Shown: one piece after another, positions 1 through 16,646 of the stretch
How positions within the stretch are numbered: position 1 is the first letter of the stretch
Layout of the letters: every line of letters begins with the position of its first letter
Origin: Paraphysomonas bandaiensis
Lineage: Eukaryota; Protista; Chrysophyceae
NCBI GenBank assembly: GCA_965644295.1
Contig: CBFFRP010000644.1
Location: 1-39,701 of the forward strand
Direction: 5' to 3'
DNA length: 39,701 bases
The notes under the pieces: model-generated
What the model saw: the letters and a program-made list of their open reading frames with translations, nothing else
Databases searched by the model: none
What the model was told of the DNA's origin: nothing
Made by a program: the position numbers and the translations under genes

Positions 1-10
1 ACTCCTACAC

Positions 11-2113
11 ATGACTACTACAGCACATACAAGCTTCTCCTTATCACTCCAGTATTATGCTGTATATCAGGTATACGCCCCCCTAGTTACACGCCGACAC
101 CGTTACACTTCACCCTCACCACACCCACCCCTTCACAGAAAACACTACACTCAGCCGTTACTCAGAGGCCCATCCAACACTCACACACACAATACTGTCA
201 TCCTACCCTATCCCCTACACCCACTGCAGGATACTACCAACCACGTCTTCCTGTCGGCCCAAACAACCGTTGCCCACATTGCGCCCACCGCTCATACACA
301 CAGTATACAGCGTACTGTACACGGTGAGCAGCAACCTCTCGCACAACACCTTCGAGTCGCCACCACCTTTCTGCATCATATCACCAATATCACCTATCGT
401 ACACACAACAAAATGCACACACGGTCTCGAGCCAACAAGCCTACTCAACCCCAATCCAAGCGCACCTCTGCCTTCCAGGCCTACAACATACCCTCCCTAC
501 AAGGCTTAGACCTGTCTATCGACAAACAACCACATGCAACGGAGGTGCACATACCTCTCCCCTCTCTCCTCCCGAATTTTCTTTACCAGTGCGAAAGCCT
601 CAAACATAACACTCCTCACTCCATCATCATCAATGGTCTGCGAGTTGGAGACTATGAGCAACTCGCAGGAGTTTGTCATCGGATCAAGCACGACCTCCAC
701 CTTCCCATTGATGAACCATCCACAGCGTTCCTGGAAGATTTCGCGCGCGCCAAGCATGCAGTCAATATATCAACACTTGCCCCAGGAACTTCCAATCGAG
801 CTATACTCCTTTTACCCCTTCACAACGTGCCACCGCACATTGCAACACAATTCCCTGACCACCCTCTTGCAGATCACACCTCAATGCCGAGTAAGATGCC
901 CGTTACATTTGACCTGTCCATCGTCGTCAACCATAGGAACACGGCCCGTGATCTGCAAGTAGACGAGACAAGAACATTCAACATTACCTTCTCCCACTTG
1001 GACCAAGAGACCATCGATGACCTCCAGCAGCAGTCCAAATTCTATGAGCCCATTGTCACGTTTTTCGGACTCCCGGAGGTCCTCCTACAGGCCAAAGCAG
1101 AGACCTACACAAGAATACTTTGTCGGTTGCGCGATCTCCTCCATGACACTGATATCGATGTCGACTCCATCCAGCTTCTCTACAATGACATCTCTCACCA
1201 GAACGAAGCCCGCAAGGACAAAAAGCAACCTTTGCACAAAGTGCTGCACCTATACATCCCGATGGCAAAATCCCCCACTGGCAAGGACCATCGGAAAGAC
1301 ATACTCCACGCCTTGTTTCAAACTTCTGACACGTCTGCCACGCGTACTCTCCAACTTGGATCACACTCCATCTCAATGACAGCCTCTCCGGTGCCGCCGT
1401 TGCGAAAACTCAAGCAGCAGACTCGACATACCCCGTTCACACTGATACACATACTACATGCTCCAGCCCTCCGAAAATCATGGCTGCTGCGCGCGCTCTG
1501 CCACATCGGAGTCCCATCGCATCATGTCCTTGACGCCCTACATACCACCATACCCTTTGCCGACGTACATGACATTGGTAACCTACACACCGCCCTCACC
1601 TTGCTATGCTCTCCAGAGAGCGGTGTCACCATGGCGGCATCCCGCATTACCCTGCAGAACATACTCCGAGTAGCTGCTCACAGTCCCGACCTCCAACTCG
1701 ACGCGAATCTACCTGCACCCGCAGGATGCCCGTACCCTCTTACCGACTTCTCTTCTCTACAGACGCTCCCAACAGTGCCCCCTCAGCCTCCTACCTCTCC
1801 ACCCCCGAGAGCTACTGTCACACGCATACCCCACAAGCGCCTGTACTCCCACTCCAGGGCCTCAACGCCCCCCAACCATCCCTCAGAAGAAACCCTACGG
1901 GATTTATACCAGCAGGCCAACGAACTTAACACCACGCTCTTCCTTGGTAATCCACACATATTCTGCGATTACGCCAGCCACATTGCCCAGGCCGCGCACC
2001 AGGCCATGCAAGACAACTCCCCCTTTGCTCCCCCACCCATCCTCCACGCAGCGCTGGCCGCACGCTCATCGACAGATAGAGACCCCGCCGCGACCCCCGC
2101 GACTCCCCATTGA
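11..2113 (+). CDS. ORF1 of the LINE (gag-equivalent by position, no recognisable domain); true start may be ATG 413 (MHTRSRANKP)
   Basis: 700-codon open frame directly upstream of ORF2 and in the same frame. The first ~134 codons look like low-complexity His/Thr-rich UTR sequence. Confidence 0.7.
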   Translation: MTTTAHTSFSLSLQYYAVYQVYAPLVTRRHRYTSPSPHPPLHRKHYTQPLLRGPSNTHTHNTVILPYPLHPLQDTTNHVFLSAQTTVAHIAPTAHTHSIQRTVHGEQQPLAQHLRVATTFLHHITNITYRTHNKMHTRSRANKPTQPQSKRTSAFQAYNIPSLQGLDLSIDKQPHATEVHIPLPSLLPNFLYQCESLKHNTPHSIIINGLRVGDYEQLAGVCHRIKHDLHLPIDEPSTAFLEDFARAKHAVNISTLAPGTSNRAILLLPLHNVPPHIATQFPDHPLADHTSMPSKMPVTFDLSIVVNHRNTARDLQVDETRTFNITFSHLDQETIDDLQQQSKFYEPIVTFFGLPEVLLQAKAETYTRILCRLRDLLHDTDIDVDSIQLLYNDISHQNEARKDKKQPLHKVLHLYIPMAKSPTGKDHRKDILHALFQTSDTSATRTLQLGSHSISMTASPVPPLRKLKQQTRHTPFTLIHILHAPALRKSWLLRALCHIGVPSHHVLDALHTTIPFADVHDIGNLHTALTLLCSPESGVTMAASRITLQNILRVAAHSPDLQLDANLPAPAGCPYPLTDFSSLQTLPTVPPQPPTSPPPRATVTRIPHKRLYSHSRASTPPNHPSEETLRDLYQQANELNTTLFLGNPHIFCDYASHIAQAAHQAMQDNSPFAPPPILHAALAARSSTDRDPAATPATPH

Positions 2114-2164
2114 CGGTGTTGGGGAAGTTTCATAATACATGCATGCCCCTTCATGAGACTTCCC
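2111..2164 (+). promoter_or_regulatory. Putative stop-codon readthrough signal: UGA-CGG, 8-nt spacer, 12-bp stem-loop
   Basis: TGA at 2111-2113 is followed by CGG. No in-frame stop occurs between 2114 and ORF2. GGGAAGTTTCAT (2122-2133) pairs with ATGAGACTTCCC (2153-2164) with one G-U. Confidence 0.7.
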
Positions 2165-5100
2165 GTGCAACCTACCACGCACCCCCCCACATCAGTTCGA
2201 CAACCGGAGGCACATACGCATCCACTTTTAACAAGGCGCTCGGATCCCTCCCAACACACACGACTCTGTCCCCTCCACACTCTTCCTAACCCTCCCCACC
2301 AAATCTGCAACCTGACAGGTTCGTTGACTGAGGAAAAGCAGTGCAGACTCCACAGCGGTCTGTCCACGGCCCTCGGTCATCACCTGGGCTCCCTACAACC
2401 TCTTATTCCTCGAATCACTGAGGGGACTGCTGTGGACATGCTGTGCGGACCACTTAACAGTCTGTTCACAGCCCATGGCGTCGCCACACTGACTCACCAC
2501 TCCTTCTCACTTCTCCATGTTCACACCCTTACTGCTATTATACACATCACACACCTCCTAAACACTGCGCCAGCACGGCAGTGGACAGTGGAGACGTCAT
2601 GCAGGTTCAGCAAGAACCTGTTCATGGCCCATAGTCCGCCGCTGTATTTGGATCCACCCCACCACCCACAAACCCACCCTCATCACACTCTCCATACCCC
2701 TCCCCACCAAACCTACAACCTGACAGGCAGGTTGACTGAGGCGAAGCCGTGCAGCCTTCACAGAGGTCTGTCCACGACCCTTGGTCCTCACCTGTACTCC
2801 TCACAACCCCGTATTACTCGAATCAATAAGAGGACTGCTGTGGACATGCTGTGCGGACCACTTAACAGTCTGTTCACAGCCCATGGCGTTGTCACACAGA
2901 CTTACCACCTCCTCTCACCTCTCCATGTTCACACCCTCACGGATATTCTACGCATCACACAACTACTCCTCCTCATCACATCCCTCTTACACTTAAATCC
3001 CCCTGCGCAGACGCAGTGGACTGTGGAGATGGCATGCAGGAACAGCATGAACCTGTTCATGGCCCATGGTCTAGCACCGCGAATTGTGCACCCACACACA
3101 CCTCTACCCACCACTAACACTACCCAAATTCACCCCTTATACTCCTCATCGAGTTCACAATACCCGCTCTACTCACACATGACTCATCCCTCTGCCCTCC
3201 GCCAAGGCGTTGGCTTCAGCAGCGACGCCAGCGGCGATGGCCCCAAGCCCAAATCCCAAGAAGTCAAAAGAAAGCAAAACGCCAAAAAGAAGGAACGGCG
3301 TAAACGGCTAAAACGGCTCTTCCTCCAAGGGGAGATCACGGACATCCCGCAGCACCTTAAACGCCGGTGCCTTCGAGATCGGAGGAGGAGGCTTCAACAT
3401 CACAGTCGGGTCTGGGAGGCCCACATCCAACACCACCTTCGTAAGAGAACGGCACCTGGACAAACGATTGCCCCAGCTGTGTTCAACATACTGGATCAAC
3501 GACCTACCCCATGGCTGATGCGAACACGACAGCCACTAAGGCCCACCTCTGAATCCGCACACCCAGACGCAGTCGACTACTATAGAGCACACCCAAACGG
3601 CGACACCCGATTTCAAATCCTCCGCGGATGTCAAAAACCCAATATCACCTGCGACAACTCTCAAAGAGGGGTATGGGCAGTGGAGAACATACCAACTGGC
3701 ACACCACTCTTCCCCTACGTCGGGCACTACATCACCGGCACACCGTCAGCCAGCACATACCTCCTTCAACTCCGCGAGGAAGAGAAATATATACAGGCGG
3801 AACCCGCCATGGTGGACTATGGATACGTCGCATTCCGAAAACCCAGTGACCCACTCCCCAAACGAATCCCTCGCGCATTCGGAGCCTGCTGCAATACCAT
3901 CCCTGTGGAAGACCTCGGCACACGCGTATACAACGCCCGTATTCGTCCCCGGGATGAAAATGACCTCTCAGACTGCATATTCATCGATGCCTGCGCAGAC
4001 ATCCACCCGCAGGAAGAAATCCTTCTGGACTACGGTGACGGCCACCTCATCTCACGCACAAACAAGACACCAGACGAATGTCTTCGCGCCTACAGAGCGT
4101 ACCTCCGCACGGCAGAGGCACCTGACACCCACCCGCCGTCGATTCGACGCTCCCCCCGCCTGCGTACCACCGCCACTGCCACTCACAATCCTCGACACCC
4201 ACAAGGAAGCACCACCACGAAGGCGTCGGCAGTGACCTCCAGAAAACAGCCAAGAGCCCACACTCCTCCCAAGGCAGCATTTGTCGACGACACCACAGAA
4301 CAATGGACCTTCTACTCTCCGTCTGGTCTCATTGCCATGACGCTATACCCCTCAGAGCTACAACGTCTACTTGAACTCTCCAGAGCGTCCGCCACTCGCA
4401 GTACTATCAAAACTCTAGTCGCCACCTGCCTTAAGAAAGGAGAGATATGCACCGCTAGGAAATACACGACAGCTGAGGTTAACACCACCCCTGGTAATGG
4501 TTTCTGTGGGATAGGAGCACTAGGTCCACTCCTCCCGGAATACTCCACCATACACTCAACCCGACCCACTAAGGGACCACTGCTCAACCCTGATGACCCC
4601 ATAGACAACGAATACTTACAGGAGCTGCTCAACTACAGTCAGGCTGTGATTATATCCCTCTCAGACCAAATAATCGAAGAGGTGGGAGACAGGGCAGTTC
4701 TCGACTTCCTACTTGAGTTAATCGACGCTTACCGCATAGCTCTCTCCGCCGACGTGCCTACAAAGACAGGTCTCCCACCTCAATACTGGGCTCAAACGGA
4801 CGCCCTCATGCTCATGGCCGAAACCCACGGTATTCACATCAGGATATGGCAGGACCCAACGCTCCCCACAGAGCCGGTGTTCCTCAATCCAAACTGGGCC
4901 ACATGGGCGAGCCACCATCGTACCTTCCTGCCAGATACCGAGCGCAAGACCCCAAAGGACATATTCTGCTGCAACCAACACTTCTTTCTCGATCTGAGGG
5001 AACCTGCAGAGGCCGAATTACACCGTCTAATGGAACTTCTCCCACACCTCTATGCTGACAGGCTTGCCCCCTCCCTCCCATTAGTCCCAGCTCATACCCA

Positions 5101-8100
5101 TGCTGCCCGAACTCAACAGGGGCCAGAATACGCGTCCGACAGCAGCGGCGACGGCCCGTCCACCCACCCGCATCTCCACAAACACCCACCGACGCAAAAT
5201 CCACCCAGACCACGCCAGTTTGGACCCGGATACAGTAGTGACGACAGCGGCGATGGCCCGCGCAAGCGACGACCACGCAAACCCCCTAACGAGCCTCAAC
5301 CACCCAAAACCCCAGGACACACTCACAAACCCGATGCCCACACCACGACACCCGCTCCAGACACCACACGGCAACCTCCCGGACGGCGTCGTCACAGCCT
5401 GACGCTTGCTGACTACTTTCCGCCCATCCCGCCACCCAAGGCTGACACCCGGAGCACACCCGCGGATCAACCAACACTCTCGCCCACAGAACAAACCTCG
5501 ATCGCCAACACTCTGGACATTCCCCCATCCCAAGACCGGCCAACCCCACGTGTGTCATCATCCCCCCCGCCACTACTACCCCAGCCGGCCCGGCGAGAAG
5601 CGACTCCGTTCACCAGTTCACTTACCAACGCCTGGACCGCGTACGACAACACACACCGAGTTGCAGTCTCCCTACGCGAAGACCTGCTACGCCACATCCA
5701 CAACACCGTCATGGCAGGCACGACTAACTGGAGTCAGCTTCTTCAAATTATACACGACGACGCAAACTACATCCAAGTTGCCAACTTCGACTGGGAGGAT
5801 GACTACAGAGCCACAATAGCACGCGGCCTAGACGCCCTTGCAGCCACATACCAAATCCATACCGCCCCCTCGCCTGGACATTACCCTAACGTGCCCCTAC
5901 AAACTGCTGAAGATGCAAAAGCACTGCATAGGTTCATTGCCCACTTACAACGAATTTGTCTTGCATCAGGACAGGCTCACACAAGCCGACTGCTCCACAC
6001 CCTCCAATGCGCGCACAAGGCTCTAACCACCATGCCCCCGCAGCGATGTGCACTCTCTGCAGATCATCATATGGAGATCACTGACGTCCAGACATTGCTC
6101 CAGCTTCTTCGTACCAACTTCCGACTATGGAGAGAAACCTCAGGCTCCTTATCTAGCGGCTGGGTAATGCTACACAATCACCACAACCACGACCCCAAGG
6201 CTGCGACCACACACAACGTCGCTGTTACCAACAAACATTACTTCCTCCTACGAATACCGGACATCGGATCCAAGCTCGACGAGGCGCACTGCAGAGCCAA
6301 ATCGGCACTCTCTCACTTCATCCATCACGCAGCACAGAGGACCCCACAGCCACACCCTAGAAAGGAGCATCAACCCCAAGCAGCCCTGCCAACGCCCACG
6401 CCACTAACGATATCCGCGGGCCACCTCACCCTTAGCACCACACAGCGGGGTGCCAGAGCCATAACCGCGCGCCTAGTTGAACCGGGCACACGCAACTCCC
6501 CACGAACAGCCATCCAGACAGCTGGGCGTGTGTTACGTGTACACATAACTACCGCGTCCGTCCAGGCAGCTCACCGCATACCCGCAAACGGGTACTGCGC
6601 ATACGGAACACTTTACCGACTGCACACGCTCTGCGTGGGAATGAGACACACAGCCAATCACTGGAATTTGGATCTCCAGAAACCAGAGCATCGACTACAC
6701 TTAGGCCACTGGCTTAGCCAAATTCGGACCGCAGCACTAGACAGTCCACACTGCACGCCAACCATCCTTAGCAAAACTGCGCACGCCATACACTCCCTTA
6801 CAGTCAAGCATTCCCCCACATACGCTACTCCACAAGACATTCAACACTGGCTCTCCGTCCGCGAGCTACACATTCTATCCTCCTACATTGGCCCAGTCAC
6901 CACATGGACAGCAGACGGTGACAACATCACAATCGTCGGAATCCCCGACGCACCAATCACTCACAGCCCCGCCTGGACATCCGACGAACTGAGAGATGCC
7001 ATCACCGACGACCGACCTCATCTTGTTCTGCACGACGCCCACTACTACCACCTTAACCCCAGAGGGCTAGCAGCAGAACTAGACAACGCACTTCTTGATC
7101 TCGAAGCAGCATTTCTGTGCCCACAACTATACCGACCCCCCAGTCCAACAGAACTCAGCACTGGGAACACCGCCCCCCCGGCGCCCCTGCCTCCGAAACA
7201 ACCCCAGCAAAGCATCACCCACAGCACCACACCCTGGCCGCCGACACCAACAAATTGCACGACGCCCAACCTCCCCCGGAGGGGTCCCCACGTCTCCACA
7301 CCCTTGACGTCACCCGGAAAATACTCTCAACACCGCACGTCCACGACAGCGGGCAGTTCCCCACCTGACGCGCCGCCACGCATTCCTCACCTCCGAGATG
7401 TCCCCGGAGCAAGGAGAGCCAAAGGAAAGAAAGCACGGAACCCAACGCCCGTCCCCACGCGAAAACAGCCTGCCCGTACAGCCCGCACCACAAGCTCCTA
7501 CGCAGAAGACCCCGACGAAGTCCAAACACACGCCATATACCGCCCACGGGCTACTTTCAACACACTACTCCAAACGGCCCACCCACCCCTCCCGCTCACC
7601 TGGGACACAACGTTACGATACAAGGTACTAGTGGGCACGGCAGACACAGTTACCAAGGGGAACGCCCTATATGCGGGGGAACCAATCCCTGCCCATACCA
7701 TTATTTCTGAGTACACTGGACACCGCCTACCCATAACAGAAGCCAGGTCCACCGGTTACACTTCCGACTACCTCGTGCAAGACGCGAAAGGTACATTTGC
7801 GATAGACGCAAGGGACAAACGAAGCAAAAGTATACTATGCGCAGCGGGGTACATCAATGATCCGTTACAGGCCAGGGCTGCTAATGTAGAATTCCACACG
7901 AAAAAAGACAAAATCTACATCAGAACCACACGGAACATTGCGACTCACGAGGAACTACTTGTACACTACGGGTACAGATACTGGCAACACCCCAAGTGGC
8001 CGCTTGAGATCCTACTACAAGCGAGAGAGGCATACGCTGACGACGTTGAATTCTGCACGCAGGAGTGGCAAGACCTCATCGCCAGTAAGCAATCACATGC

Positions 8101-11100
8101 ACAGGCGACACCCAAACCCCCAGAGCCGAACCACAGCCTGGTGTCATGTACTACGACCTTCATATTCTCCACATGGAACGTAAACGGTAACCCCTCCAAC
8201 AACCCTGGAAAAATCGAAGCTATCCTACACTACATACGCACACACCAAATAGACTGTCTTTACCTGCTCGACGTCCGCCTGTCACAAAACCAGGCACTAT
8301 ACCTTGCTGACTACATCCAGGACCAGATTCCAGGGGCTCTTGTCTGCAACTTTCTCAACTCAACGCGGAAACAGGGCCCCAACGATCCGCACATGGGAGG
8401 AACTATTGCAGTGATCAGCGAAGCGTGGAAAGGAAGAGTCCGCCACACAGGCTCCGACTGCACTGGATTAGGGCTCATCTCCCGAATCGAATTTCACACC
8501 GGCAGACCTAACAGAGAAGAAAGATTCACTACCATAGGAGTGTACCTCCCCCCCAAGCCTGCGACCGATGGACCCTGCACACTATGGGCATCACTAAAAG
8601 CCTTCGGCAAGAATGCTCACAGGAACGGCGCCACGGGACCCTATGACATCCTCACGAACATCCTGTCCAAATGGATCACCAAAGCCAGGGCAAACAACCA
8701 CACAGTACTAGTTGGCGGAGATTTCAACGCCACCCTAGAGGGACAAACGGGTAAGAGGGACCTCAGAGGTTTAGCAAGATCCCTGCAGCTAACAGCCCCT
8801 CTCATACAAACCCTTGACCAGGAGGCACCATACCACACCTTTTACTGGAAAGACCGCGGCATCTCCAGAATAGACCATATACTACATTCTCCCCTTCCTA
8901 CACACTTTCATAACACTCGCAATGGATGCCACACATCTGATGCCATCGCTGCTGCACCATTTGATCACAGACCGGTCTGGATCCAGGTTGACATTAGCGG
9001 TACAGGACCAACCCTTCCCAAGGAACGGCACCGTCAGATTCCTCCACGGCTCAACATCAACCCTGCCGACCACGACATGGTAGAAGAATTCCAGACCCAC
9101 CTACACAAACATCACCACAAATTGTCCACGCTCCCCACGCACCCCCACCCCGCTGAAAACGCAGCCATAAAACTGGCGCTCCTCCATCGTATCACCTTAG
9201 AAGCGGCCCACGACACCCGCCACGCGGACAGAACCAAGAAAAACGGCATCCACGCAAAATGCCAGCGAAAACGATCCCGGTTCAAGGATGGCTTCTCCGC
9301 CGAAATGAGAGTCCTGCAAATGGCACTCCACCTGATTGTATATCTCAAACGCAAGCTCTTCACCAGATCCGGCCACCTACACCCCCGTGTCACCGACGCA
9401 TACTTATACAGCATCGTCCGGAGAGGAATCTGCAGATGGGAGCGCACCACTGCTGCACTTGACCGCTCATCAGAGGACCACGATCGACCGCCCACAGCCA
9501 TCATCCGGGCCGCGATAGACCCAAGGCAAATACTAACATGGACCACAACTAACGTCACGGGCAAAGCCTTCGACAACCTCCGTGACAGTCTCATGCGAAT
9601 GCTCCACGGGAGAGCCCGAGCTGAAATGAGGAAAAGGATGACCACCAGAACACACGCCCTCCAAGCCCAACTCGAAACACAACAGATACGCAAGATCCTC
9701 CAATCCATCGGACTAAAGCGGAAGCAGACACCAGCGCTCACCCGCCTCACCCTGGAGGACGGGGCCACGATCACCATTCCATCGGAGATACAGGAAGCCC
9801 TGAACAAGCACTTCACGGCACACCACGCATTCCCCAAAGGCATGGACCCCACCGCCCACAGACTACACTACGACGACAACTGGTGGCGCGAACTAACCGC
9901 CGGTGAGAACCTACACAATCCGCTCCACCCAAACTCCGCTATCCCGATACAACATCATTCCGGACTACGCAAACTATGCGAAACAAAGGTCGGCTCATCC
10001 ACCTCAGCAAAGATACAGGAAGCCCTCCGGCAACAAATTTCGATCCATGAGTTCCACTCCACACTTGATAATATGGCCAAGGACAAAGCACCCGGACCGT
10101 CCATGGTCACCACAAACATGATAAAAAGTTGGACCCCACAAGTCAAAATAGAAGTACTCGGTCTCCTACAAACGCTCTGGACTCACCGCCACATCCCACA
10201 CTGGTGGAAAGACAGAGTCATGACCCCTTTACTCAAGAAACCGGGAAACACCTCCCTCAAAAACTTAAGACCGATCGGTTTGCTCGAGGTTCTCCGTAAA
10301 CTGATGACACGCATTATTACCCACCGACTCCTCCAAATCTGGGAAGACGATGATGTCCTACACCCGGCGCAACACGGTTACAGGTGGAGACATGGAACAG
10401 ACACTGCCATTCTTCGTGTACTAGCGGCCACCGAACTGGCAAAGCTCACAGGAAACGCGAAAATATGCACCTTTTGGGACTTTCAAAAAGCTTTCGACTC
10501 CATTGCACCTAACCTCCTCAAACTCGCGTGGGCGAGACTTGGGGTTCCAGAAGACACGATCAGATGGCTCAGCGAACTCGACAGCGAGGGGCGCACCTAC
10601 ATCTGGACACCGCACATGGCTGACCACATCGATCCCAAAACCCTAGAGGAATTAAGTCAATCCGACGGTTCCTTCCTCCAACACCCCGACATGGGCTTCT
10701 CCGCCAACAGAGGCGTTACACAAGGCGGAACAGAGTCCACAGTCGCATGGATCGTCATCTTCGACATGATTCTCTGCTGGTCTGACCTTAAGGACGACAG
10801 TCAGGACAAAGCGTACGCGGACGACCTCTCCCAAATAACCAACTCCATTGCCACCGCGCAGATGAAGGCGGACAGACTCTCATCCTTCTGTGCATTCACG
10901 GGAATGCAGCTCGCCATAGCCAAAACGGAATGCATTGCAATAGGCTCCCCCTTTGAAGTTGAGGCCATGCTAGACACAGAGCCCACCATAACCATTAGAG
11001 ACTGGAACTGGAACCCGCACACCATCCCCATTAGAGCCACCACAGTCCCCACCAAATACCTCGGAGTTCTACTTCCGTTCTCCTCGAAGGACACCGACTC

Positions 11101-13309
11101 GCATGCCTGGTGTGTCGACTACGTCACCACCTCCGCAACACACCTACGCTACAAATGTGCATCCCCAGACTGTAAACTGTTAGTGCTTAACACACAAGTA
11201 CTCCCGACACTACTCTACAAGGCCACCAAAGCCTCCTGGACGTACGACAGATACCTGGACATAGACAAACTCCTTGCACGAGCAGCCAGGAAGGTCCTCC
11301 GACTACCCCCAGGATACCCCACAGCCCTCATCTATCTGCCCACGAAATACAAAGGACTTGGCCTGCGTAAGTTCTCCACATGGGCCCAGACCCAAAAGTG
11401 GCACACACTCCAAAGGGCCATCACCCTGGGGGGGGAACCCAAGCGAGCCGCCATATCCATCTTAAAACGTCACGATCACAATCGCCCAGACATCGACCTG
11501 TACATCACTAGCCTGGTCCAATGGGGACACCAGCTCGGAATTCGACTGCAGCCCCCATCCCCGGCCACGCCCCAATTCCGAGAAACCATCGACAAGGTCC
11601 AAACCCAACTCCAACTACACAACAATCATCCACACGACTTTCAAGCCATCTTCACTGATGGTTCCTTCACTCGCACAAACCTCTCTCCTGCTCATCTCCT
11701 CGGCGACGCTCACGTACAGCACGCAACACACTATGGGGGGGCAGCAATTGTCTGGCTCCCACCCAAAACCAACTGGAGCACAGGAATAACCAAAATCCTT
11801 CGACTTACAGCCCCCGAGCATACCTTACCCGGGATAACCCCATACACCTACGAGACCCTGGCAATGTCAGCAGCCCTCACGTTCTCGAAACTCATATCCC
11901 CCACCGTACCTATGTGCACCGACTGCCAAGCAGTCCAAACACGAACCACGGAAGCTCTCTCTCGTCGGCGGCGGGCCCTCGGCACAAAGCCCCAGGGCAT
12001 CTTTTACGAATGCCTCGCCACAGGAAATCACCGGCAGCGACCAATACGATGGGTCCGCTCCCATCCAGAACGCCGAACACAAGATCGGAACAACTGGACC
12101 TACAACGACTATGGCATTTACATAGCTGACGCTGCCGCCAGTGGAGAGTGGTCGGCGATTGACAAAATATTAGGCGGCACAAACTACAGCGTGGTCACGA
12201 CTGAGATCACACACCTCATCGACGAATTCCTCACTGCCGGCCAATGGCAATGGAGAAGATACGACAAATTCCTCCACACCGACTGTGGTCCCATGCTAGG
12301 GGATGTCACCGAACTCCAACACCAATGGGACCTCCACCAATACATCCTCACGCGTGACGGCACGTACCCCACAAGCGCAAGCCGAGACTCGCAGTACTGG
12401 ACACGCAGCGGCACCAGGCTCCCAAACAAACTCCATCCCCTCAAGCCCAATAATTCGCCCAACTGCTATGTCCCATTCCACGACCGCATCCGCGAAACTG
12501 CATATGTCTGGGACAAATCATACGCGATGGGCAGAAATAGGGCCAAGGGCAAACATGGAGACGAACTCACAACAGCAGCCAAATGCACAGACTGTGACCA
12601 CAACCTGGACAACATGGCGCATATGCTCCTCCACTGTCCACACCCTGAGATCGCCCAACTACGTGAACATGCCTTCCACACACAGCAAACCCAGCTTACA
12701 AAACTCCACGGGCAACGACAACCCATCCCCTGGTTCCAAACCGCCCTACAGAGACTGGCGAGGGCTGCCTGGGATCCCACCACACCCCAGGTTGAGAGAT
12801 ACTGGACCGGACAACTAACAGCCTCGCAACTGGCAAATGCTTTCGGACACAACATCTCCACCACGTTACACGACCACCAGTTCCATAAACTCGAGAAATC
12901 CGTCACCAAAGTCCTGCTCCCCCTCTACAATGGAGGAATAAACATGCTCAAAAACAGAGGATGTCGATTTCACAGTAACGATGCGACAGCAATGACACCA
13001 ACCTCGACTCATGCCAGCTCACAACAATGTCACACAAACCCTACCACCAACCCGACGATCCTCCAGCTACTTAAAGCAACATCCACCCCCAGAGCCGTGC
13101 CCCACACGAGACCCCGCCCCCAGCGCAAGCCTGCCAACCCGCTCCGGAGGCAGACAACACTCATCTCTGACAGAACCGCAACCACAACTAGTACTCCCAA
13201 ACCCTCCGCTAACGCACATCCACAGAATGGCACGTCACCCCCCACACCCCGACTCGCATGCGGATATGGACCACCAGATACACTACCCAAAGGACGACCA
13301 CCAGACTAA
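2153..13309 (+). CDS. ORF2 polyprotein, 3718 aa: SET, OTU-like x3, SET, AP endonuclease, reverse transcriptase, RNase H, CCHC zinc knuckle
   Basis: Uninterrupted ORF; motifs are listed in the domain features below. Confidence 0.95.
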   Translation: MRLPVQPTTHPPTSVRQPEAHTHPLLTRRSDPSQHTRLCPLHTLPNPPHQICNLTGSLTEEKQCRLHSGLSTALGHHLGSLQPLIPRITEGTAVDMLCGPLNSLFTAHGVATLTHHSFSLLHVHTLTAIIHITHLLNTAPARQWTVETSCRFSKNLFMAHSPPLYLDPPHHPQTHPHHTLHTPPHQTYNLTGRLTEAKPCSLHRGLSTTLGPHLYSSQPRITRINKRTAVDMLCGPLNSLFTAHGVVTQTYHLLSPLHVHTLTDILRITQLLLLITSLLHLNPPAQTQWTVEMACRNSMNLFMAHGLAPRIVHPHTPLPTTNTTQIHPLYSSSSSQYPLYSHMTHPSALRQGVGFSSDASGDGPKPKSQEVKRKQNAKKKERRKRLKRLFLQGEITDIPQHLKRRCLRDRRRRLQHHSRVWEAHIQHHLRKRTAPGQTIAPAVFNILDQRPTPWLMRTRQPLRPTSESAHPDAVDYYRAHPNGDTRFQILRGCQKPNITCDNSQRGVWAVENIPTGTPLFPYVGHYITGTPSASTYLLQLREEEKYIQAEPAMVDYGYVAFRKPSDPLPKRIPRAFGACCNTIPVEDLGTRVYNARIRPRDENDLSDCIFIDACADIHPQEEILLDYGDGHLISRTNKTPDECLRAYRAYLRTAEAPDTHPPSIRRSPRLRTTATATHNPRHPQGSTTTKASAVTSRKQPRAHTPPKAAFVDDTTEQWTFYSPSGLIAMTLYPSELQRLLELSRASATRSTIKTLVATCLKKGEICTARKYTTAEVNTTPGNGFCGIGALGPLLPEYSTIHSTRPTKGPLLNPDDPIDNEYLQELLNYSQAVIISLSDQIIEEVGDRAVLDFLLELIDAYRIALSADVPTKTGLPPQYWAQTDALMLMAETHGIHIRIWQDPTLPTEPVFLNPNWATWASHHRTFLPDTERKTPKDIFCCNQHFFLDLREPAEAELHRLMELLPHLYADRLAPSLPLVPAHTHAARTQQGPEYASDSSGDGPSTHPHLHKHPPTQNPPRPRQFGPGYSSDDSGDGPRKRRPRKPPNEPQPPKTPGHTHKPDAHTTTPAPDTTRQPPGRRRHSLTLADYFPPIPPPKADTRSTPADQPTLSPTEQTSIANTLDIPPSQDRPTPRVSSSPPPLLPQPARREATPFTSSLTNAWTAYDNTHRVAVSLREDLLRHIHNTVMAGTTNWSQLLQIIHDDANYIQVANFDWEDDYRATIARGLDALAATYQIHTAPSPGHYPNVPLQTAEDAKALHRFIAHLQRICLASGQAHTSRLLHTLQCAHKALTTMPPQRCALSADHHMEITDVQTLLQLLRTNFRLWRETSGSLSSGWVMLHNHHNHDPKAATTHNVAVTNKHYFLLRIPDIGSKLDEAHCRAKSALSHFIHHAAQRTPQPHPRKEHQPQAALPTPTPLTISAGHLTLSTTQRGARAITARLVEPGTRNSPRTAIQTAGRVLRVHITTASVQAAHRIPANGYCAYGTLYRLHTLCVGMRHTANHWNLDLQKPEHRLHLGHWLSQIRTAALDSPHCTPTILSKTAHAIHSLTVKHSPTYATPQDIQHWLSVRELHILSSYIGPVTTWTADGDNITIVGIPDAPITHSPAWTSDELRDAITDDRPHLVLHDAHYYHLNPRGLAAELDNALLDLEAAFLCPQLYRPPSPTELSTGNTAPPAPLPPKQPQQSITHSTTPWPPTPTNCTTPNLPRRGPHVSTPLTSPGKYSQHRTSTTAGSSPPDAPPRIPHLRDVPGARRAKGKKARNPTPVPTRKQPARTARTTSSYAEDPDEVQTHAIYRPRATFNTLLQTAHPPLPLTWDTTLRYKVLVGTADTVTKGNALYAGEPIPAHTIISEYTGHRLPITEARSTGYTSDYLVQDAKGTFAIDARDKRSKSILCAAGYINDPLQARAANVEFHTKKDKIYIRTTRNIATHEELLVHYGYRYWQHPKWPLEILLQAREAYADDVEFCTQEWQDLIASKQSHAQATPKPPEPNHSLVSCTTTFIFSTWNVNGNPSNNPGKIEAILHYIRTHQIDCLYLLDVRLSQNQALYLADYIQDQIPGALVCNFLNSTRKQGPNDPHMGGTIAVISEAWKGRVRHTGSDCTGLGLISRIEFHTGRPNREERFTTIGVYLPPKPATDGPCTLWASLKAFGKNAHRNGATGPYDILTNILSKWITKARANNHTVLVGGDFNATLEGQTGKRDLRGLARSLQLTAPLIQTLDQEAPYHTFYWKDRGISRIDHILHSPLPTHFHNTRNGCHTSDAIAAAPFDHRPVWIQVDISGTGPTLPKERHRQIPPRLNINPADHDMVEEFQTHLHKHHHKLSTLPTHPHPAENAAIKLALLHRITLEAAHDTRHADRTKKNGIHAKCQRKRSRFKDGFSAEMRVLQMALHLIVYLKRKLFTRSGHLHPRVTDAYLYSIVRRGICRWERTTAALDRSSEDHDRPPTAIIRAAIDPRQILTWTTTNVTGKAFDNLRDSLMRMLHGRARAEMRKRMTTRTHALQAQLETQQIRKILQSIGLKRKQTPALTRLTLEDGATITIPSEIQEALNKHFTAHHAFPKGMDPTAHRLHYDDNWWRELTAGENLHNPLHPNSAIPIQHHSGLRKLCETKVGSSTSAKIQEALRQQISIHEFHSTLDNMAKDKAPGPSMVTTNMIKSWTPQVKIEVLGLLQTLWTHRHIPHWWKDRVMTPLLKKPGNTSLKNLRPIGLLEVLRKLMTRIITHRLLQIWEDDDVLHPAQHGYRWRHGTDTAILRVLAATELAKLTGNAKICTFWDFQKAFDSIAPNLLKLAWARLGVPEDTIRWLSELDSEGRTYIWTPHMADHIDPKTLEELSQSDGSFLQHPDMGFSANRGVTQGGTESTVAWIVIFDMILCWSDLKDDSQDKAYADDLSQITNSIATAQMKADRLSSFCAFTGMQLAIAKTECIAIGSPFEVEAMLDTEPTITIRDWNWNPHTIPIRATTVPTKYLGVLLPFSSKDTDSHAWCVDYVTTSATHLRYKCASPDCKLLVLNTQVLPTLLYKATKASWTYDRYLDIDKLLARAARKVLRLPPGYPTALIYLPTKYKGLGLRKFSTWAQTQKWHTLQRAITLGGEPKRAAISILKRHDHNRPDIDLYITSLVQWGHQLGIRLQPPSPATPQFRETIDKVQTQLQLHNNHPHDFQAIFTDGSFTRTNLSPAHLLGDAHVQHATHYGGAAIVWLPPKTNWSTGITKILRLTAPEHTLPGITPYTYETLAMSAALTFSKLISPTVPMCTDCQAVQTRTTEALSRRRRALGTKPQGIFYECLATGNHRQRPIRWVRSHPERRTQDRNNWTYNDYGIYIADAAASGEWSAIDKILGGTNYSVVTTEITHLIDEFLTAGQWQWRRYDKFLHTDCGPMLGDVTELQHQWDLHQYILTRDGTYPTSASRDSQYWTRSGTRLPNKLHPLKPNNSPNCYVPFHDRIRETAYVWDKSYAMGRNRAKGKHGDELTTAAKCTDCDHNLDNMAHMLLHCPHPEIAQLREHAFHTQQTQLTKLHGQRQPIPWFQTALQRLARAAWDPTTPQVERYWTGQLTASQLANAFGHNISTTLHDHQFHKLEKSVTKVLLPLYNGGINMLKNRGCRFHSNDATAMTPTSTHASSQQCHTNPTTNPTILQLLKATSTPRAVPHTRPRPQRKPANPLRRQTTLISDRTATTTSTPKPSANAHPQNGTSPPTPRLACGYGPPDTLPKGRPPD
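2270..3075 (+). repeat. Imperfect tandem duplication (~408-435 bp period); each unit holds three related stem-loops
   Basis: GGACTGCTGTGGACATGCTGTGCGGACCACTTAACAGTCTGTTCACAGCCCATGGCGT is identical at ~2424 and ~2832. Hairpins lie at 2326-2378, ~2429-2472, 2581-2639, 2734-2786, ~2837-2880 and 3016-3072. Confidence 0.9.
3662..4045 (+). other. SET-like domain 1 within ORF2
   Basis: RGVWAVENIPTGTPLFPYVG ... ACCN ... YNAR ... IFIDACADIHPQEEILLDYG matches the SET motifs GxGxxA, EYxG, NH and EELxxDYG; the NH motif is diverged. Confidence 0.8.
4481..4990 (+). other. OTU-like (papain-fold) cysteine protease domain 1 within ORF2
   Basis: TPGNGFCGIGAL (Cys 4505-4507) ... YWAQ ... IRIW ... NQHFF (His 4979-4981), resembling the OTU PxDGxC / W / H[FY] motifs. 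Confidence 0.7.
5768..6250 (+). other. Degenerate OTU-like domain 2 (His box kept, catalytic Cys motif absent)
   Basis: LSADHHMEITDVQTLLQLLRTNFRLWRE ... VAVTNKHYFLL aligns by eye with LPPQYWAQTDALMLMAETHGIHIRIWQD ... IFCCNQHFFLD of domain 1. Confidence 0.5.
6572..7054 (+). other. OTU-like cysteine protease domain 3 within ORF2
   Basis: IPANGYCAYGTL (Cys 6596-6598) ... HWLS ... HLVLHDAHYY (His 7040-7042). Confidence 0.7.
7655..7984 (+). other. SET domain 2 within ORF2 (compact, no pre-/post-SET Cys clusters)
   Basis: GNALYAGEPIPAHTIISEYTG ... AIDA ... AGYINDP ... ANVEF ... IYIRTTRNIATHEELLVHYGYRYW. Confidence 0.88.
8159..8995 (+). other. Apurinic/apyrimidinic-like endonuclease (EEP fold)
   Basis: TWNVNG, GVYLPP, GGDFNA, TF...SRIDHIL, DHRPV. 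Confidence 0.93.
10078..11075 (+). other. Non-LTR reverse transcriptase domain
   Basis: KAPGP, LRPIGLL, QHGYR, DFQKAFDSI, RGVTQGG, YADD (10814-10825), KYLGV. Confidence 0.97.
11645..12139 (+). other. RNase H domain
   Basis: IFTDGS ... YETLA ... TDCQAV ... WVRSHPE ... IADAAA gives the D-E-D-D set plus His. Confidence 0.88.
12584..12637 (+). other. CCHC zinc knuckle
   Basis: CTDCDHNLDNMAHMLLHC = C-x2-C-x8-H-x4-C. Confidence 0.85.
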
Positions 13310-13324
13310 ACTTAAAACAAGGGA

Positions 13325-13361
13325 TGGTTGCACCAAGGTGCTTGCAGCAATGCACAAGCAG
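13325..13361 (+). promoter_or_regulatory. Conserved 3' UTR stem-loop with GNRA tetraloop (putative RT recognition element)
   Basis: TGGTTGCACCAAGGTGCTTGCAGCAATGCACAAGCAG is 32/37 identical to the reverse complement of 22729-22765, with a compensatory A-U to G-C change. Confidence 0.75.
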
Positions 13362-13459
13362 TCCCGAGATAAAGCATTTCATATTTTGTGTTACACTTTT
13401 AGTCTAAAGTAATAGCTAGATAAATGCAACAAGTTCTCTCATGTAATAATCAGATCTAT

Positions 13460-15403
13460 TTATATGGGTAACTTCCTCAAGTGTTCCCTCATTTCCGGCA
13501 ATACTTTGGCCATCTCCACCTGCTCCTCACACCTCTGCCGCAGCTCCGCTGTGATCTTCTCCACCACCCCTGGCGTCCTCATGCACCATTGGCAGAACTC
13601 CCCATAGCTCTTAGACCTCGCCTTCTCCACCTGCTGACTAGGGTCGACCTCTTCCTTGGCCTCTGCTTCCCTCCCCCTTCTCATGCTAGTGCGAGCCTCT
13701 TCCTCTCTTCCTGTCATACTCTCCTTCTCTACGGTCAACCAAGTCTCCTCATCACTGCTCACCTCGTCTGGATACTCTTCTCCCCATCGATCCATGTTCG
13801 GTCTTCCTTCCCCTCTCATCCACCTAACCTGATCTCTATAGCTTTTCAGAGGCGGTCCTATCTCCCTGAGCTCTCTCAATGCTACCTGAATGACCTCCTT
13901 CTGCTCCTCCAGATACATCAACCTCTCTGCCAACCTATTGCTGGTCGTGAGATAGTCCAGCAGCTCCGGTATCTTGTCCCTCTCCTGGCTCAGTAACTCG
14001 AAATCCATGTCTCGGCGCCCCCTGGTCCTTGCATGTTGGATGATCCCCAGCCACGACACATAGAACTCTCTTTGTATATCTGGTACTCCCTCCTTCACTG
14101 CAGCCATCTTCAGCTCCTCCATCAATCTATCCAATACCCCCCTGTACGTGCCTTCCGTCATCCTCTCTCTCACATTCTGTATCTCTCTCCTCACCAGCCT
14201 CTCACTCTGCCATACATACTTGTCTTGATGTTCTGGTTCCACCGGCTTCACCAGATGTAGCAGCATATTCCTCTGAAGCATGTTCCGGGTCTCCTGTGAT
14301 AGTCCCACGGGTTTCGAGGCTACCTGAATGTCCTCCTGCATCCATCCTCCATCTCGTCTGCTCTCCTCCCCATCTGTTCTCCGTCTACCACTGGACCTAC
14401 TTCCCATACTCCACTCATCCTGTGACAACATCTCCTCTCCTCGTCTTCTTCTCCCGCCCCCTACTCCCATTGCAGCCAACTCCTCCATCACTGGTGTACT
14501 TCGATACTCTTCCCCTATCTCCCTTCTGGCTGGTGTCTTTGGATAGTCGTCCCCTCTTTCTCCTCTATGAGACTGCCAATGCTCTGCTCCTGTGGCCTCC
14601 CTCCTACTCGTCGGTGTCTGCCCCTCTTCCCTCATTATCTTCCCTTCTCTCCGACCTCCTCTATACCAGCATACCCAACACTGTGTAGCATACTTCGGCG
14701 CTGATCCTGCCTTCAGTACTGCCTGGCAGCTCCTACACTTACGATCAAATATGAGAGTCTCTGTCCGTGGATTCCCTCTCATCTCTATCACAGGCTGATC
14801 TCTTGCTTTCTCTGTCGCATACTTCTGACGCACCCACACCCATGATGGAATATCTGCAGGCCTGCTCTCCCTCTCTTCCTGCTCCAATTCCCCTAGCCGC
14901 ATCTTCTCACTAAACAATTTCCTGGTGGTTTCCATACCCCTCTCTCCGGTCTCTCTCGCTCGTACAGGCATTCCTGTTAGTGGGTCTCCCTCGTCTGACT
15001 CTTGATAGTCTGGAGCCCCACTCCAATCTCTGTACAGTCTCTCCATTGTGGCCCCCATCCCTGGCCTGCCCTTGTTGCTGTGTCTACTCCCGTCCCCACG
15101 GTTGTAGACTGGTTCCTCCAATGGGGCCGTCCCTTGGCCGGTCCCGGTATCCCCCCATGCCTCGGAGAGTAATGTGTCCCGTGCACTGTCCACATCGTCC
15201 TCCCATTGCTCTGCCCTTCGCTCTTCCCCCCTTTGGGATCGTTGCCATGAAATTCCGCTGCCCCCTCTTCGTCGTGGCTGATCAAGTCCACTGGTTCGCG
15301 AGGGCAGCCCACGTTGTCCACCACATGAGACGATCGGAGATGTGGGGGTCCTTGGCAGAGGGCTTTGCCTTGTTGATGCATCAGTTGGGTACCTTGTGCT
15401 CAT
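13460..15403 (-). CDS. Orphan 647-aa Arg/Glu/Gly-rich protein with a C-x2-C-x15-C-x2-C motif and a helical C-terminal half; probably mobile-element derived
   Basis: Intronless ORF with a purine-rich sense strand. CRSC...CWVC lies at 14669-14737. The stop codon is 4 nt from the LINE 3' terminal motif. Confidence 0.6.
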   Translation of the reverse strand: MSTRYPTDASTRQSPLPRTPTSPIVSCGGQRGLPSRTSGLDQPRRRGGSGISWQRSQRGEERRAEQWEDDVDSARDTLLSEAWGDTGTGQGTAPLEEPVYNRGDGSRHSNKGRPGMGATMERLYRDWSGAPDYQESDEGDPLTGMPVRARETGERGMETTRKLFSEKMRLGELEQEERESRPADIPSWVWVRQKYATEKARDQPVIEMRGNPRTETLIFDRKCRSCQAVLKAGSAPKYATQCWVCWYRGGRREGKIMREEGQTPTSRREATGAEHWQSHRGERGDDYPKTPARREIGEEYRSTPVMEELAAMGVGGGRRRRGEEMLSQDEWSMGSRSSGRRRTDGEESRRDGGWMQEDIQVASKPVGLSQETRNMLQRNMLLHLVKPVEPEHQDKYVWQSERLVRREIQNVRERMTEGTYRGVLDRLMEELKMAAVKEGVPDIQREFYVSWLGIIQHARTRGRRDMDFELLSQERDKIPELLDYLTTSNRLAERLMYLEEQKEVIQVALRELREIGPPLKSYRDQVRWMRGEGRPNMDRWGEEYPDEVSSDEETWLTVEKESMTGREEEARTSMRRGREAEAKEEVDPSQQVEKARSKSYGEFCQWCMRTPGVVEKITAELRQRCEEQVEMAKVLPEMREHLRKLPI

Positions 15404-15659
15404 ACCCGCGGATAACTTCTTACTACGTGCAATGACGTCTGATCTTACTAGGTGCCTGTTAGATGCTATTAAACAGACCCTTAAGCTCTGATAATCGTAT
15501 AACTATCAATTATTAGAACTATCCTTACTTATGCTCTCATAACCTTAAAGAGTGACTCACATAGCAATCTTGCACTTACAAGCTGGCTCTACACTTAAGC
15601 ACCCATATCATACTCATCACCATCGTATCTCTACAGTTATCGTAATGCTGTCCCTGTAG

Positions 15660-15750
15660 TCGTACTTATCTACTACTCATCGTACCTATCTACTACTCAT
15701 CGTACCTATCCACTACTCATCGTACCTATCTACTACTTATCGTACCTCAT
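15660..15750. repeat. Minisatellite, 20-bp unit CGTACCTATCTACTACTCAT x ~4.5
   Basis: Units start at 15661, 15681, 15701, 15721 and 15741. Confidence 0.92.
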
Positions 15751-16646
15751 ACCCACTTACATACGTACTCACGTACTCAAGTACATACGTACACACCTAC
15801 CTCCACCCAACAGCTACCCTACCACCGTATACTCACTGTAGTCAGGATACACTCACCCCACGATATATGGGACTACATGCGGATTTGTCACAGATGTACT
15901 ATTCACAGTTTACCGTTAAGCGCATATTTCTGTCACCCACTCGAGGGTGGCAACTTCTGATTATCCCGATTGCTATATCCCTGCGATTGATTCATAGATT
16001 AAGTTGTCTCACCAATGCGCCTCAACGACAGCAAGCACATTGAACCAAACTGCCATCGAACCAATCATATGCTTCCAATCCCATTCCTACCTGCTGCTGG
16101 TGATAATTACTATCAGTTACGGTTATTTCCGGTATATCACTGTATAAACCGTATAATAGGAAGTGAAACGTCAAGAAATGGAAGCGTGTCCTCCAATAAG
16201 AAGCGCATGTGGCCTGCTGCTGGATGTATATATCAGTGTGGTCTACAGCAGTGTATTCTACTGCACTATGCGTATGTATGTATGGCACTGCGTATGTATG
16301 GGAATCCCTGTAGAGTATGCTGCTGTTTTATGGACTGCTAGAGAAGGAAGGAATAACATCACTCACATATACGAGCAACTGGAGAGGTCGATCACTGTGC
16401 CACTTGTCAGCCTGCTTCATTATATACTGAAGAGGTATACACATGAAGTGAGATTATTCCTGTCTGTCATCGTATTAAAGGGATTGACTGTCAGTGAACA
16501 GCACATACACTGAGGATGGATATAATGGACATGCTGTAAACTACAATTAACTATTAGTGGCTCTTATCTCTACGCAACAGAGTAATTAAAGAAGAGATTA
16601 TCATATTCTGATTAAGTAGTGAGGGATTAAAGAAACATTTGCAACC

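Follow-up and report, generated by a model that had tools for sequence, protein, structure and literature searches.

A giant LINE on a Paraphysomonas bandaiensis contig carries SET domains and predicted OTU-like domains ahead of its endonuclease and reverse transcriptase

A contig of 39,701 nucleotides (nt) from the chrysophyte Paraphysomonas bandaiensis (GenBank assembly GCA_965644295.1, contig CBFFRP010000644.1), which we analysed whole and refer to as the window, carries at its start a giant retrotransposon of the long interspersed nuclear element (LINE) type, with SET domains and OTU-like Cys/His domains ahead of its endonuclease, reverse transcriptase (RT) and RNase H-like region. These are encoded by one open reading frame (ORF), ORF2, at 2153..13309 on the plus strand, where all features described below lie unless stated otherwise; amino acid (aa) numbers are codons of ORF2. 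ORF2 is open over all its 3718 codons, a span in which the other two frames contain 99 and 109 stops, and this bears out the single intact frame proposed in a preliminary description of this DNA. A Pfam scan of the whole of ORF2 returned RVT_1, Exo_endo_phos, two stretches of SET, and PRDM2_PR. The first ~15 kb of the window have 51–59% G+C and are strongly C/A-rich on the plus strand; beyond that point G+C is 35–48% and the skew is absent (the host has 42% GC).

The AP-endonuclease (APE; 8171..8899, aa 2007-2249) matches Pfam Exo_endo_phos with E 8.8e-12 and the RT core (10235..11068, aa 2695-2972) matches RVT_1 with E 4.8e-18. The earlier reading of a giant APE-type LINE in which SET and OTU-like domains precede APE, RT and RNase H is upheld. 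The nearest solved structures to the RT are R2 proteins (E 5e-11) and human L1 ORF2p (8c8j, E 4e-5). The RNase H-like region (11600..12202) shows the pattern TDGS...E...D...HPE...AD, and D20, E85, D108, H155 and D177 are invariant across 13 relatives (alignment A5), a D-E-D-H-D pattern that matches the description of LINE RNase H domains (PMC4640811). At the same time, there was no Pfam match for this region and a search of the PDB with the alignment profile found nothing relevant, so that the RNase H assignment holds for the residue pattern and not for profile matches. A C-terminal CCHC motif, CX2CX8HX4C (12584..12637), can be read in the translation, with a weak zf-RVT match (E 0.12), and the stop codon and a short 3' untranslated region, its end approximate, follow at 13307..13450, where copy L034 matches up to 13369, the end of its contig (L-numbers, L001-L034, denote related contigs, mostly environmental or metagenomic, and P-numbers related proteins).

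Both SET domains reported earlier (3662-4045 and 7655-7984) score above the Pfam SET (PF00856) cut-off of 22.4 bits. SET1 (3665..4036, aa 505-628) reached 25.0 bits (E 2.7e-5) when its segment was scanned alone, and SET2 (7658..7972, aa 1836-1940) reached 39.4 bits (E 8.9e-10), with a further 34.1 bits for PRDM2_PR. The cofactor and catalytic motifs of SET domains are NH(S/x)C and ELxxDY. SET1 has a canonical EEILLDYG and, instead of NHSC, a CCNT in which the Asn is kept, and SET2 has EELLVHYG, keeping the Tyr, with GYINDP instead of RFINHS and hence the NH dyad lost. Orthologues of SET2 were found in 14 loci and keep E-[EQ]-x-x-x-x-Y-G, Y-W and K-W-P; judging from these, SET2 is the SET domain ancestral to the family. 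The two domains had been described as a tandem pair, a claim that did not survive: SET1 is 26–31% identical to P0005-P0014, a set of small stand-alone SET proteins of marine assemblies (E 1e-13 to 1e-16), and matches SET2 with an E of 0.003 only, which rules out SET1 as a duplicate of SET2 and places it, by sequence, in a different SET subfamily. A stand-alone protein of the SET1 subfamily, P0040, is encoded at 7182-8012 of a Tara marine metagenome contig (L033), with a 649-aa ORF and an opposite-strand long terminal repeat (LTR) retrotransposon pol (RT, RNase H and integrase) at a distance of about 1.2 kb, and the SET1 subfamily may travel with other mobile elements too.

Three further segments each show a P-x-x-G-[FYL]-C motif followed, 135–158 residues on, by H-[FY]-[FY]. 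OTU-like domain 1 (OTU1; 4400..5089, aa 750-979) has Cys785 (nt 4505) and His943 (nt 4979), as placed by the A4 alignment described below; OTU2 (5723..6346), of a type we call A, has Asp1227 in place of the catalytic Cys and keeps His1362; and OTU3 (6494..7147), of type B and adjoining SET2, has Cys1482 (nt 6596) and His1630 (nt 7040). The orthologue of OTU2 in L005 retains the Cys (GRGFC), and the window's OTU2 is therefore degenerate, as had been noticed earlier. We aligned 12 Cys/His domains from the window and five related contigs (A4): the His and two Trp are invariant, the Cys motif has its Pro and Gly almost throughout, and the Cys is present in 10 of the 12, being lost in the window's OTU2 and in the A domain of L013. 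The A4 profile finds OTU1 with a domain E of 7e-54, OTU1 itself being a member of A4, and recovers a held-out domain from L001 with E 5e-22. On this alignment evidence the three segments are mutually homologous Cys/His domains.

The assignment of these segments to the OTU fold comes from structure prediction. Single-sequence AlphaFold2 modelling of OTU1 gave a predicted local distance difference test (pLDDT) score of 36, and modelling of OTU3 on the 12-sequence alignment gave pLDDT 70.8 and a predicted template modelling (pTM) score of 0.69. In the OTU3 model the Cys opens a helix and the His opens a strand, which in the model is the papain/OTU arrangement. When this model was compared with the PDB using Foldseek, every one of the top 18 matches was to a member of the OTU family or to a bacterial deubiquitinase, the sources being bacteria, yeast, rice and human. 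The list as a whole consists almost entirely of deubiquitinases, most of them OTUs, and includes a Wolbachia OTU (6w9o; probability 0.96, E 0.018), OTUD2, Legionella Ceg23, otubains, yeast Otu1, 4boz and 3by4, with nairovirus OTUs from rank 30; a viral library returned giant-virus and nairovirus OTU entries with similar scores. Support for an OTU-like papain fold in the Cys/His domains is moderate. The three OTU intervals of the preliminary description each enclose a Cys/His-type pair, and what they lack is a sequence match to Pfam or PDB entries.

The element has both close copies and distant relatives. Several fragments, 97–99% identical to it and all covering the 3' part, come from independent metagenomes, and some are decayed (L002 by a 2-bp insertion and a nonsense codon, L034 by a 1-nt insertion). 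Protein P0015 is 98.4% identical to the window, and its 90% cluster holds a peptide from transcriptome MMETSP1103 (taxid 36769, Paraphysomonas, a colourless chrysophyte); this peptide is 95% identical to aa 3238-3405 of ORF2, which indicates that the element is transcribed in culture and that its host is probably Paraphysomonas-like and not a diatom. L005 (54–82% identical) runs from aa ~983 to the end and starts beside an AT-rich flank with stops in all frames; this copy is probably 5'-truncated. L003 (43% identical) has OTU3, SET2, APE and RT. At ~660-930 of that contig a stop codon stands between the OTU3-like part and the SET-APE-RT part, which means either that this copy has decayed or that the ORF truly ends there.

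A metagenome scan with OTU3-SET2 patterns found no relatives; the distant relatives were found by scanning metagenomes with RT patterns. This distant group (L001, L006 and L010-L019) is 26–32% identical to the window element across APE to RNase H and 33–43% identical in the RT core, and the members most used below (L010, L013, L014/15, L016 and L017) are 26–28% and 34–37% identical over the same two spans. Ahead of APE, L010, L014/15 and L016 have the motif HPS....GK.[FY].S.D.GDGP with a basic tract, then a Cys/His domain of type A, one of type B, and SET. L013 and L017 keep the A domain only, that of L013 without its Cys, and L001 has a B-type domain immediately before SET. The SET-bearing elements group together in an RT tree with 98/99 support, as a clade separate from other LINEs, of which the nearest outside the family are only 22–25% identical (among those retrieved), and OTU-like domains occur on both sides of the deepest split of the clade. 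A tree of the Cys/His domains separates A from B with 83/90 support: the B group consists of OTU3 and domains of L005, L001, L010, L014 and L016, the A group of OTU2 and domains of L005, L010, L013, L014 and L017, and OTU1 forms a long branch near the A group.

Since the distant contigs share the domain order and OTU-like domains lie across the deepest RT split, a core of two OTU-like domains and a SET domain is ancestral to this LINE lineage and therefore not peculiar to the window element; the tree makes the window's OTU2 and OTU3 the orthologues of the ancestral A and B domains. The architecture is thus a real, conserved family trait, and the search for further copies, which the preliminary description had called for, succeeded for the OTU-like A/B-SET core and not for SET1 and OTU1, which were found whole only here. 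SET1-OTU1 is an N-terminal module added in this subfamily, made up of an unrelated SET domain and a third OTU-like domain.

Constraint differs between the domains. Between the window and L005, identity is 82% in RT, 75% in APE, 72% in RNase H and 71% in SET2, then 54% in OTU3 and 38% in OTU2, which is linker-like, the linkers themselves being 30–43% identical. Going by these identities, SET2 is about as constrained as the catalytic core, OTU3 moderately so and OTU2 hardly at all. Synonymous to non-synonymous substitutions number 3:13 in OTU2-3 against L002 and 21:17 from RT to the C-terminus against L034, counts which use different dead copies for each region and so make a weak comparison rather than a per-domain ratio of non-synonymous to synonymous rates.

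Upstream of ORF2 lies ORF1 (11..2113), of at least 700 aa, which has the C/A skew of the element and an in-frame codon signal and ends in a UGA at 2111-2113; it may extend 5' of the window, as there is no upstream stop within the window. We found no Pfam match for ORF1 and no similarity to the ORF1s of the relatives. ORF1 and ORF2 share one frame (11-13306), whose 4432 codons include a single stop, the UGA, followed by CGG. After it comes an open spacer (2114..3178), in the same frame as ORF1 and containing the mechanical ORF2 start codon at 2153. Over the 356 codons after the UGA this frame is free of stops, where the other two frames have 12 and 9 (P ~1e-5); a codon-usage signal is absent from the spacer, which holds an in-frame 408-bp tandem duplication (2242-2541 / 2650-2949, also 2578-2636 / 3013-3071; 83% identical) whose copies differ evenly across codon positions. 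The first ~343 codons of ORF2 (2153-3178) are a repeat-bearing, unconstrained but deliberately open spacer rather than a domain; of the ~2000 aa said earlier to precede the endonuclease, about 340 are this spacer, and the domains are indeed in that region. A 12-bp stem-loop starts 8 nt past the UGA, with the ATG at 2153 inside it.

The conserved start of ORF2 is likely to be the region 3179..3330, with Met343, the motif HPS..G.GFSSDxSGDGP (aa 345-364) and a Lys/Arg-rich stretch resembling a nuclear localisation signal; this motif and basic tract are kept near the ORF2 N-terminus in L005, L010, L013, L014/15 and L017. The second and third copies of the motif, in the form ..[FY]xSDxSGDGP, lie at 5117..5260 (aa 989-1002 and 1023-1036, or 5117-5158 and 5219-5260) with a basic tract after them, and it is here that the added module meets the ancestral ORF2. 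Written as (HPS)....G..[FY].S.D.GDGP plus a Lys/Arg tract, the motif is lineage-wide, with three copies in the window ORF (the first at 3185-3244) and others in L004, L005, L010, L013, L014 and L017. It is neither a 2A peptide (NPGP is absent) nor a beta-TrCP degron (DSG is not conserved).

In five relatives ORF2 is in the -1 frame and overlaps the end of ORF1 (L010 3165-3264, L013 862-1231, L014 1126-1393, L015 1555-1822 and L017 ~274-380), and an in-frame ATG ahead of the motif is absent in L013, L014, L015 and L017. An NNU UUU C site (CCU UUU C in L017, GAU UUU C in the others) is present in every overlap; it is a candidate -1 frameshift site which, to our knowledge, would be unusual among LINEs. 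The shared frame, UGA and open spacer in the window, taken together with the -1 overlaps in relatives, suggest that ORF1 and ORF2 are fused by recoding, and such a fusion would in turn need a processing protease. The motif copies stand where cuts would serve, once after the spacer and twice after OTU1 (aa 989-1036), and we infer from this position only that the motif may be a cleavage site.

The explanation that we regard as the best, and on balance as probable, is that the window holds an intact and recently active copy (at least 13.4 kb) of an APE-type non-LTR retrotransposon from a LINE lineage of which we found no description, replicating as follows. Recoding would yield a single ORF1-ORF2 polyprotein, through UGA readthrough here and a -1 frameshift in relatives. 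The OTU-like proteases would cut this polyprotein at the ...SDxSGDGP motifs, like viral OTU and papain-like proteases, and could possibly also strip ubiquitin from element proteins or chromatin. The basic tracts would bring the complex into the nucleus, where APE, RT and RNase H would perform target-primed reverse transcription, and the SET domain or domains would methylate a lysine, either of a nucleosome or of some protein in the integration complex. We thus favour a self-processing ORF1-ORF2 polyprotein plus lysine methylation, the sequence evidence for polyprotein self-processing being at least as strong as that for the histone and ubiquitin toolkit proposed earlier. A bolder version, in which the LINE acts as a small RNA-virus-like replicase that combines a recoded polyprotein (-1 slip at U UUU C or UGA readthrough) and OTU-like cutting at ..SDxSGDGP with an active methyltransferase marking chromatin or the complex at the insertion site, is offered as speculation and is rather unlikely to hold as a whole.

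Several observations weigh against parts of this explanation. The 5' end of the element is beyond the window, after the stop codon there is no recognisable tail, and target-site duplications were not found; the intact SET1-OTU1 module was seen in this copy only, no second retrieved sequence covering SET1. Where the NH dyad would stand, SET2 has ND in near-clade elements (INDP) and DE in far-clade ones (IDE), so that catalysis cannot be assumed, and SET2 may bind rather than methylate. Pfam, including OTU (PF02338), has no match for the three window segments, for those of relatives or for any of the 12 members of A4, and against PDB sequences phmmer searches with OTU1 and OTU3 and a search with the A4 profile gave chance matches only. 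The best Foldseek E was 0.018, never below 0.01, with template modelling (TM) scores of 0.3–0.4 and a root-mean-square deviation (rmsd) of 7–8 A. The third catalytic residue of OTU proteases, Asp or Asn, stands at His+2 or Cys-3, and in the Cys/His domains His+2 is aromatic and Cys-3 is N, S, T or R, with an acidic or amide residue at neither position. OTU deubiquitinases cleave at Gly-Gly, and the motif, where cleavage is our reading of position, does not end in Gly-Gly. Finally, the stem-loop past the UGA has a z-score no stronger than -1.9, and the UGA may have arisen recently as a nonsense mutation.

The most serious alternative, which is compatible with our explanation rather than exclusive of it, is that the accessory domains act on the host, SET writing a histone mark and the OTU-like domains stripping ubiquitin from chromatin or repair factors, so as to counter silencing or to mark or select insertion sites. 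SET2 is conserved like the catalytic core, its weak PDB matches (SET1/MLL/G9a/LegAS4/PRDM9) are histone H3K4/H3K9 methyltransferases and PRDM9, the Foldseek matches are ubiquitin-cleaving OTUs, and other transposons carry OTU, Ulp1, Josephin and SET domains for which their authors proposed ubiquitin or chromatin roles. On the other hand, the NH motif is gone from SET2, the Cys is lost in one OTU-like copy here and in one of L013, and host action leaves unexplained both the missing ORF2 start codon of the relatives and the presence of the motif at module boundaries. We consider this reading possible, though less probable than the processing of a recoded polyprotein.

A more doubtful reading is that the Cys/His domains are not relatives of OTU at all and belong to a different family of papain-like proteases, or else form a scaffold without catalytic function whose likeness to OTU is confined to a medium-confidence model. 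Such a reading would fit the profile searches just described, including that of 5.8 billion proteins with A4, whose sole return was a 98% copy, as well as the low TM-scores and high rmsd, and the aromatic residues after the His where many OTUs have Asp or Asn. It sits poorly with the Foldseek results, in which the 18 best PDB matches are exclusively OTU-family or bacterial deubiquitinases and OTUs of nairoviruses and of the viral library appear too, and with the modelled positions of the Cys at a helix start and the His at a strand start.

We also asked whether the SET1-OTU1 region (about 3179-5090) could have been captured once, by this copy alone, or be a chimera of the assembly, given that SET1 is covered by no other retrieved sequence and that the closest long relative, L005, begins only after it. 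L005 cannot serve as proof that close relatives lack the module, since it looks 5'-truncated and is therefore uninformative on this point. In L004, which is ~50% diverged, the C-terminal end of OTU1 survives and the motif again comes after it; the C/A skew and codon usage of SET1 and OTU1 are those of the element, unlike the host; and the reading frame is intact throughout, all of which make such an origin improbable. A domesticated host gene or a dead relic, as the single full copy without identified tail or target-site duplication might suggest, is very hard to reconcile with several 97–99% identical copies in independent metagenomes (some frameshifted or with a nonsense codon), 21 synonymous to 17 non-synonymous changes against L034, an unbroken frame of 3718 codons and a transcript fragment in a culture transcriptome.

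By domain order, the element resembles I-group and Ambal-type LINEs, with which it shares APE, RT, RNase H (D-E-D-H-D) and CX2CX8HX4C in this order, a separate upstream ORF1, and a multi-copy population with 5'-truncated and decayed members; among APE-type LINEs, RNase H has been reported in the I-group clades I, Tad1, Loa and Ingi (PMC4640811). It differs from them in having ~1650 extra conserved residues before APE, with SET and OTU-like domains, and in having ORF1 and ORF2 joined by candidate recoding signals, not by a start codon. A ubiquitin/SUMO-type cysteine protease fused to the RT protein is also found in NeSL/Utopia LINEs, where it is Ulp1-like (PMC4640811), and in Dualen/RandI LINEs, where it is Josephin-related (PMC9977147). 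Here, in contrast, the predicted fold is OTU-like, there are two to three copies and they are N-terminal to APE; a SET domain is not listed for those LINEs in either paper, and the restriction-like endonuclease and Josephin hallmarks of Dualen/RandI have no Pfam match in ORF2 or in its last 318 aa. Our full-text search of the literature, which did not include Repbase Reports, found no description of a LINE with SET or OTU domains, in line with the preliminary description, which knew of no LINE with this combination, and a review of giant transposons does not mention such a LINE.

Among DNA transposons, Helentrons and Ginger1 carry OTU-like cysteine proteases, a proto-Helentron of the stramenopile Phytophthora has also been described with a SET-domain ORF, and the authors proposed chromatin or ubiquitin signalling roles (PMC4067079, PMC2836005). 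Those elements move by a Rep/helicase or an integrase-like transposase, whereas ours is a retrotransposon (Rep/helicase families have no Pfam match in any ORF of the element); their SET and OTU domains are separate ORFs or C-terminal add-ons; and their OTUs match Pfam PF02338, unlike the Cys/His domains here.

Arterivirus PLP2, tymovirus PRO and nairovirus vOTU both process polyproteins and deubiquitinate. The likeness of the element to these viral OTU and papain-like proteases would consist in a protease inside a large recoded replicase polyprotein, and nairovirus OTU structures are among the Foldseek matches; sequence similarity to them is undetectable, however, and the candidate ..SGDGP motif is not of the Gly-Gly type. 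Captured chromatin enzymes are also known in retrotransposons, for example cytosine methyltransferases in dinoflagellate and charophyte elements, which likewise have an epigenetic 'writer' in frame with the replication machinery. In our case the writer is of the SET lysine methyltransferase type, is found in a LINE and is ancestral to the lineage.

The usual picture of a LINE is that of a minimal machine with ORF1, an endonuclease and an RT. This whole lineage, at 26–29% identity across APE to RNase H, keeps a SET domain about as constrained as the endonuclease, together with two or three OTU-like domains, which, if their predicted fold is right, would be the third ubiquitin-type protease fold among LINEs, after Ulp1 and Josephin. 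The parallel with the SET and OTU genes of stramenopile and animal Helentrons suggests that unrelated elements have recruited the same host pathways more than once. The lineage offers a natural system in which to ask whether a retrotransposon can lay down lysine methylation, or edit ubiquitin, at the site where it integrates, and whether a LINE can use virus-like recoding and polyprotein processing. It also draws attention to a transposon family of heterotrophic chrysophytes, a group for whose mobile elements the literature searched has essentially no descriptions.

As for the surroundings of the element, no long terminal direct repeats were found within 1-16000, Rfam and tRNA scans of the window were empty, and exact-sequence look-ups of the window ORFs gave no match. 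Outside the element, the flank contains pieces of eukaryotic genes for a Slowpoke/BK channel, a Na/H exchanger and V-ATPase subunit d. Further along, an unbroken 2706-aa ORF (30908-39028, plus strand) lies in host-like DNA, its Pfam matches being weak and of sub-threshold style only (SH3_6, Mut7-C and a ubiquitin-like domain). Directly 3' of the LINE and convergent with it, on the minus strand at 13460-15403, is a 647-aa ORF rich in Glu, Arg and Gly, where the plus strand is C/T-rich; it has no Pfam match and no similarity to any ORF1 of the family, and could be either the gag-like ORF of another element or an artefact of base skew. At the edge of the skewed region, at 15640-15779, a 20-nt unit, TCGTACCTATCTACTACTCA, is repeated in tandem in ~4.4 copies with 94% matches.

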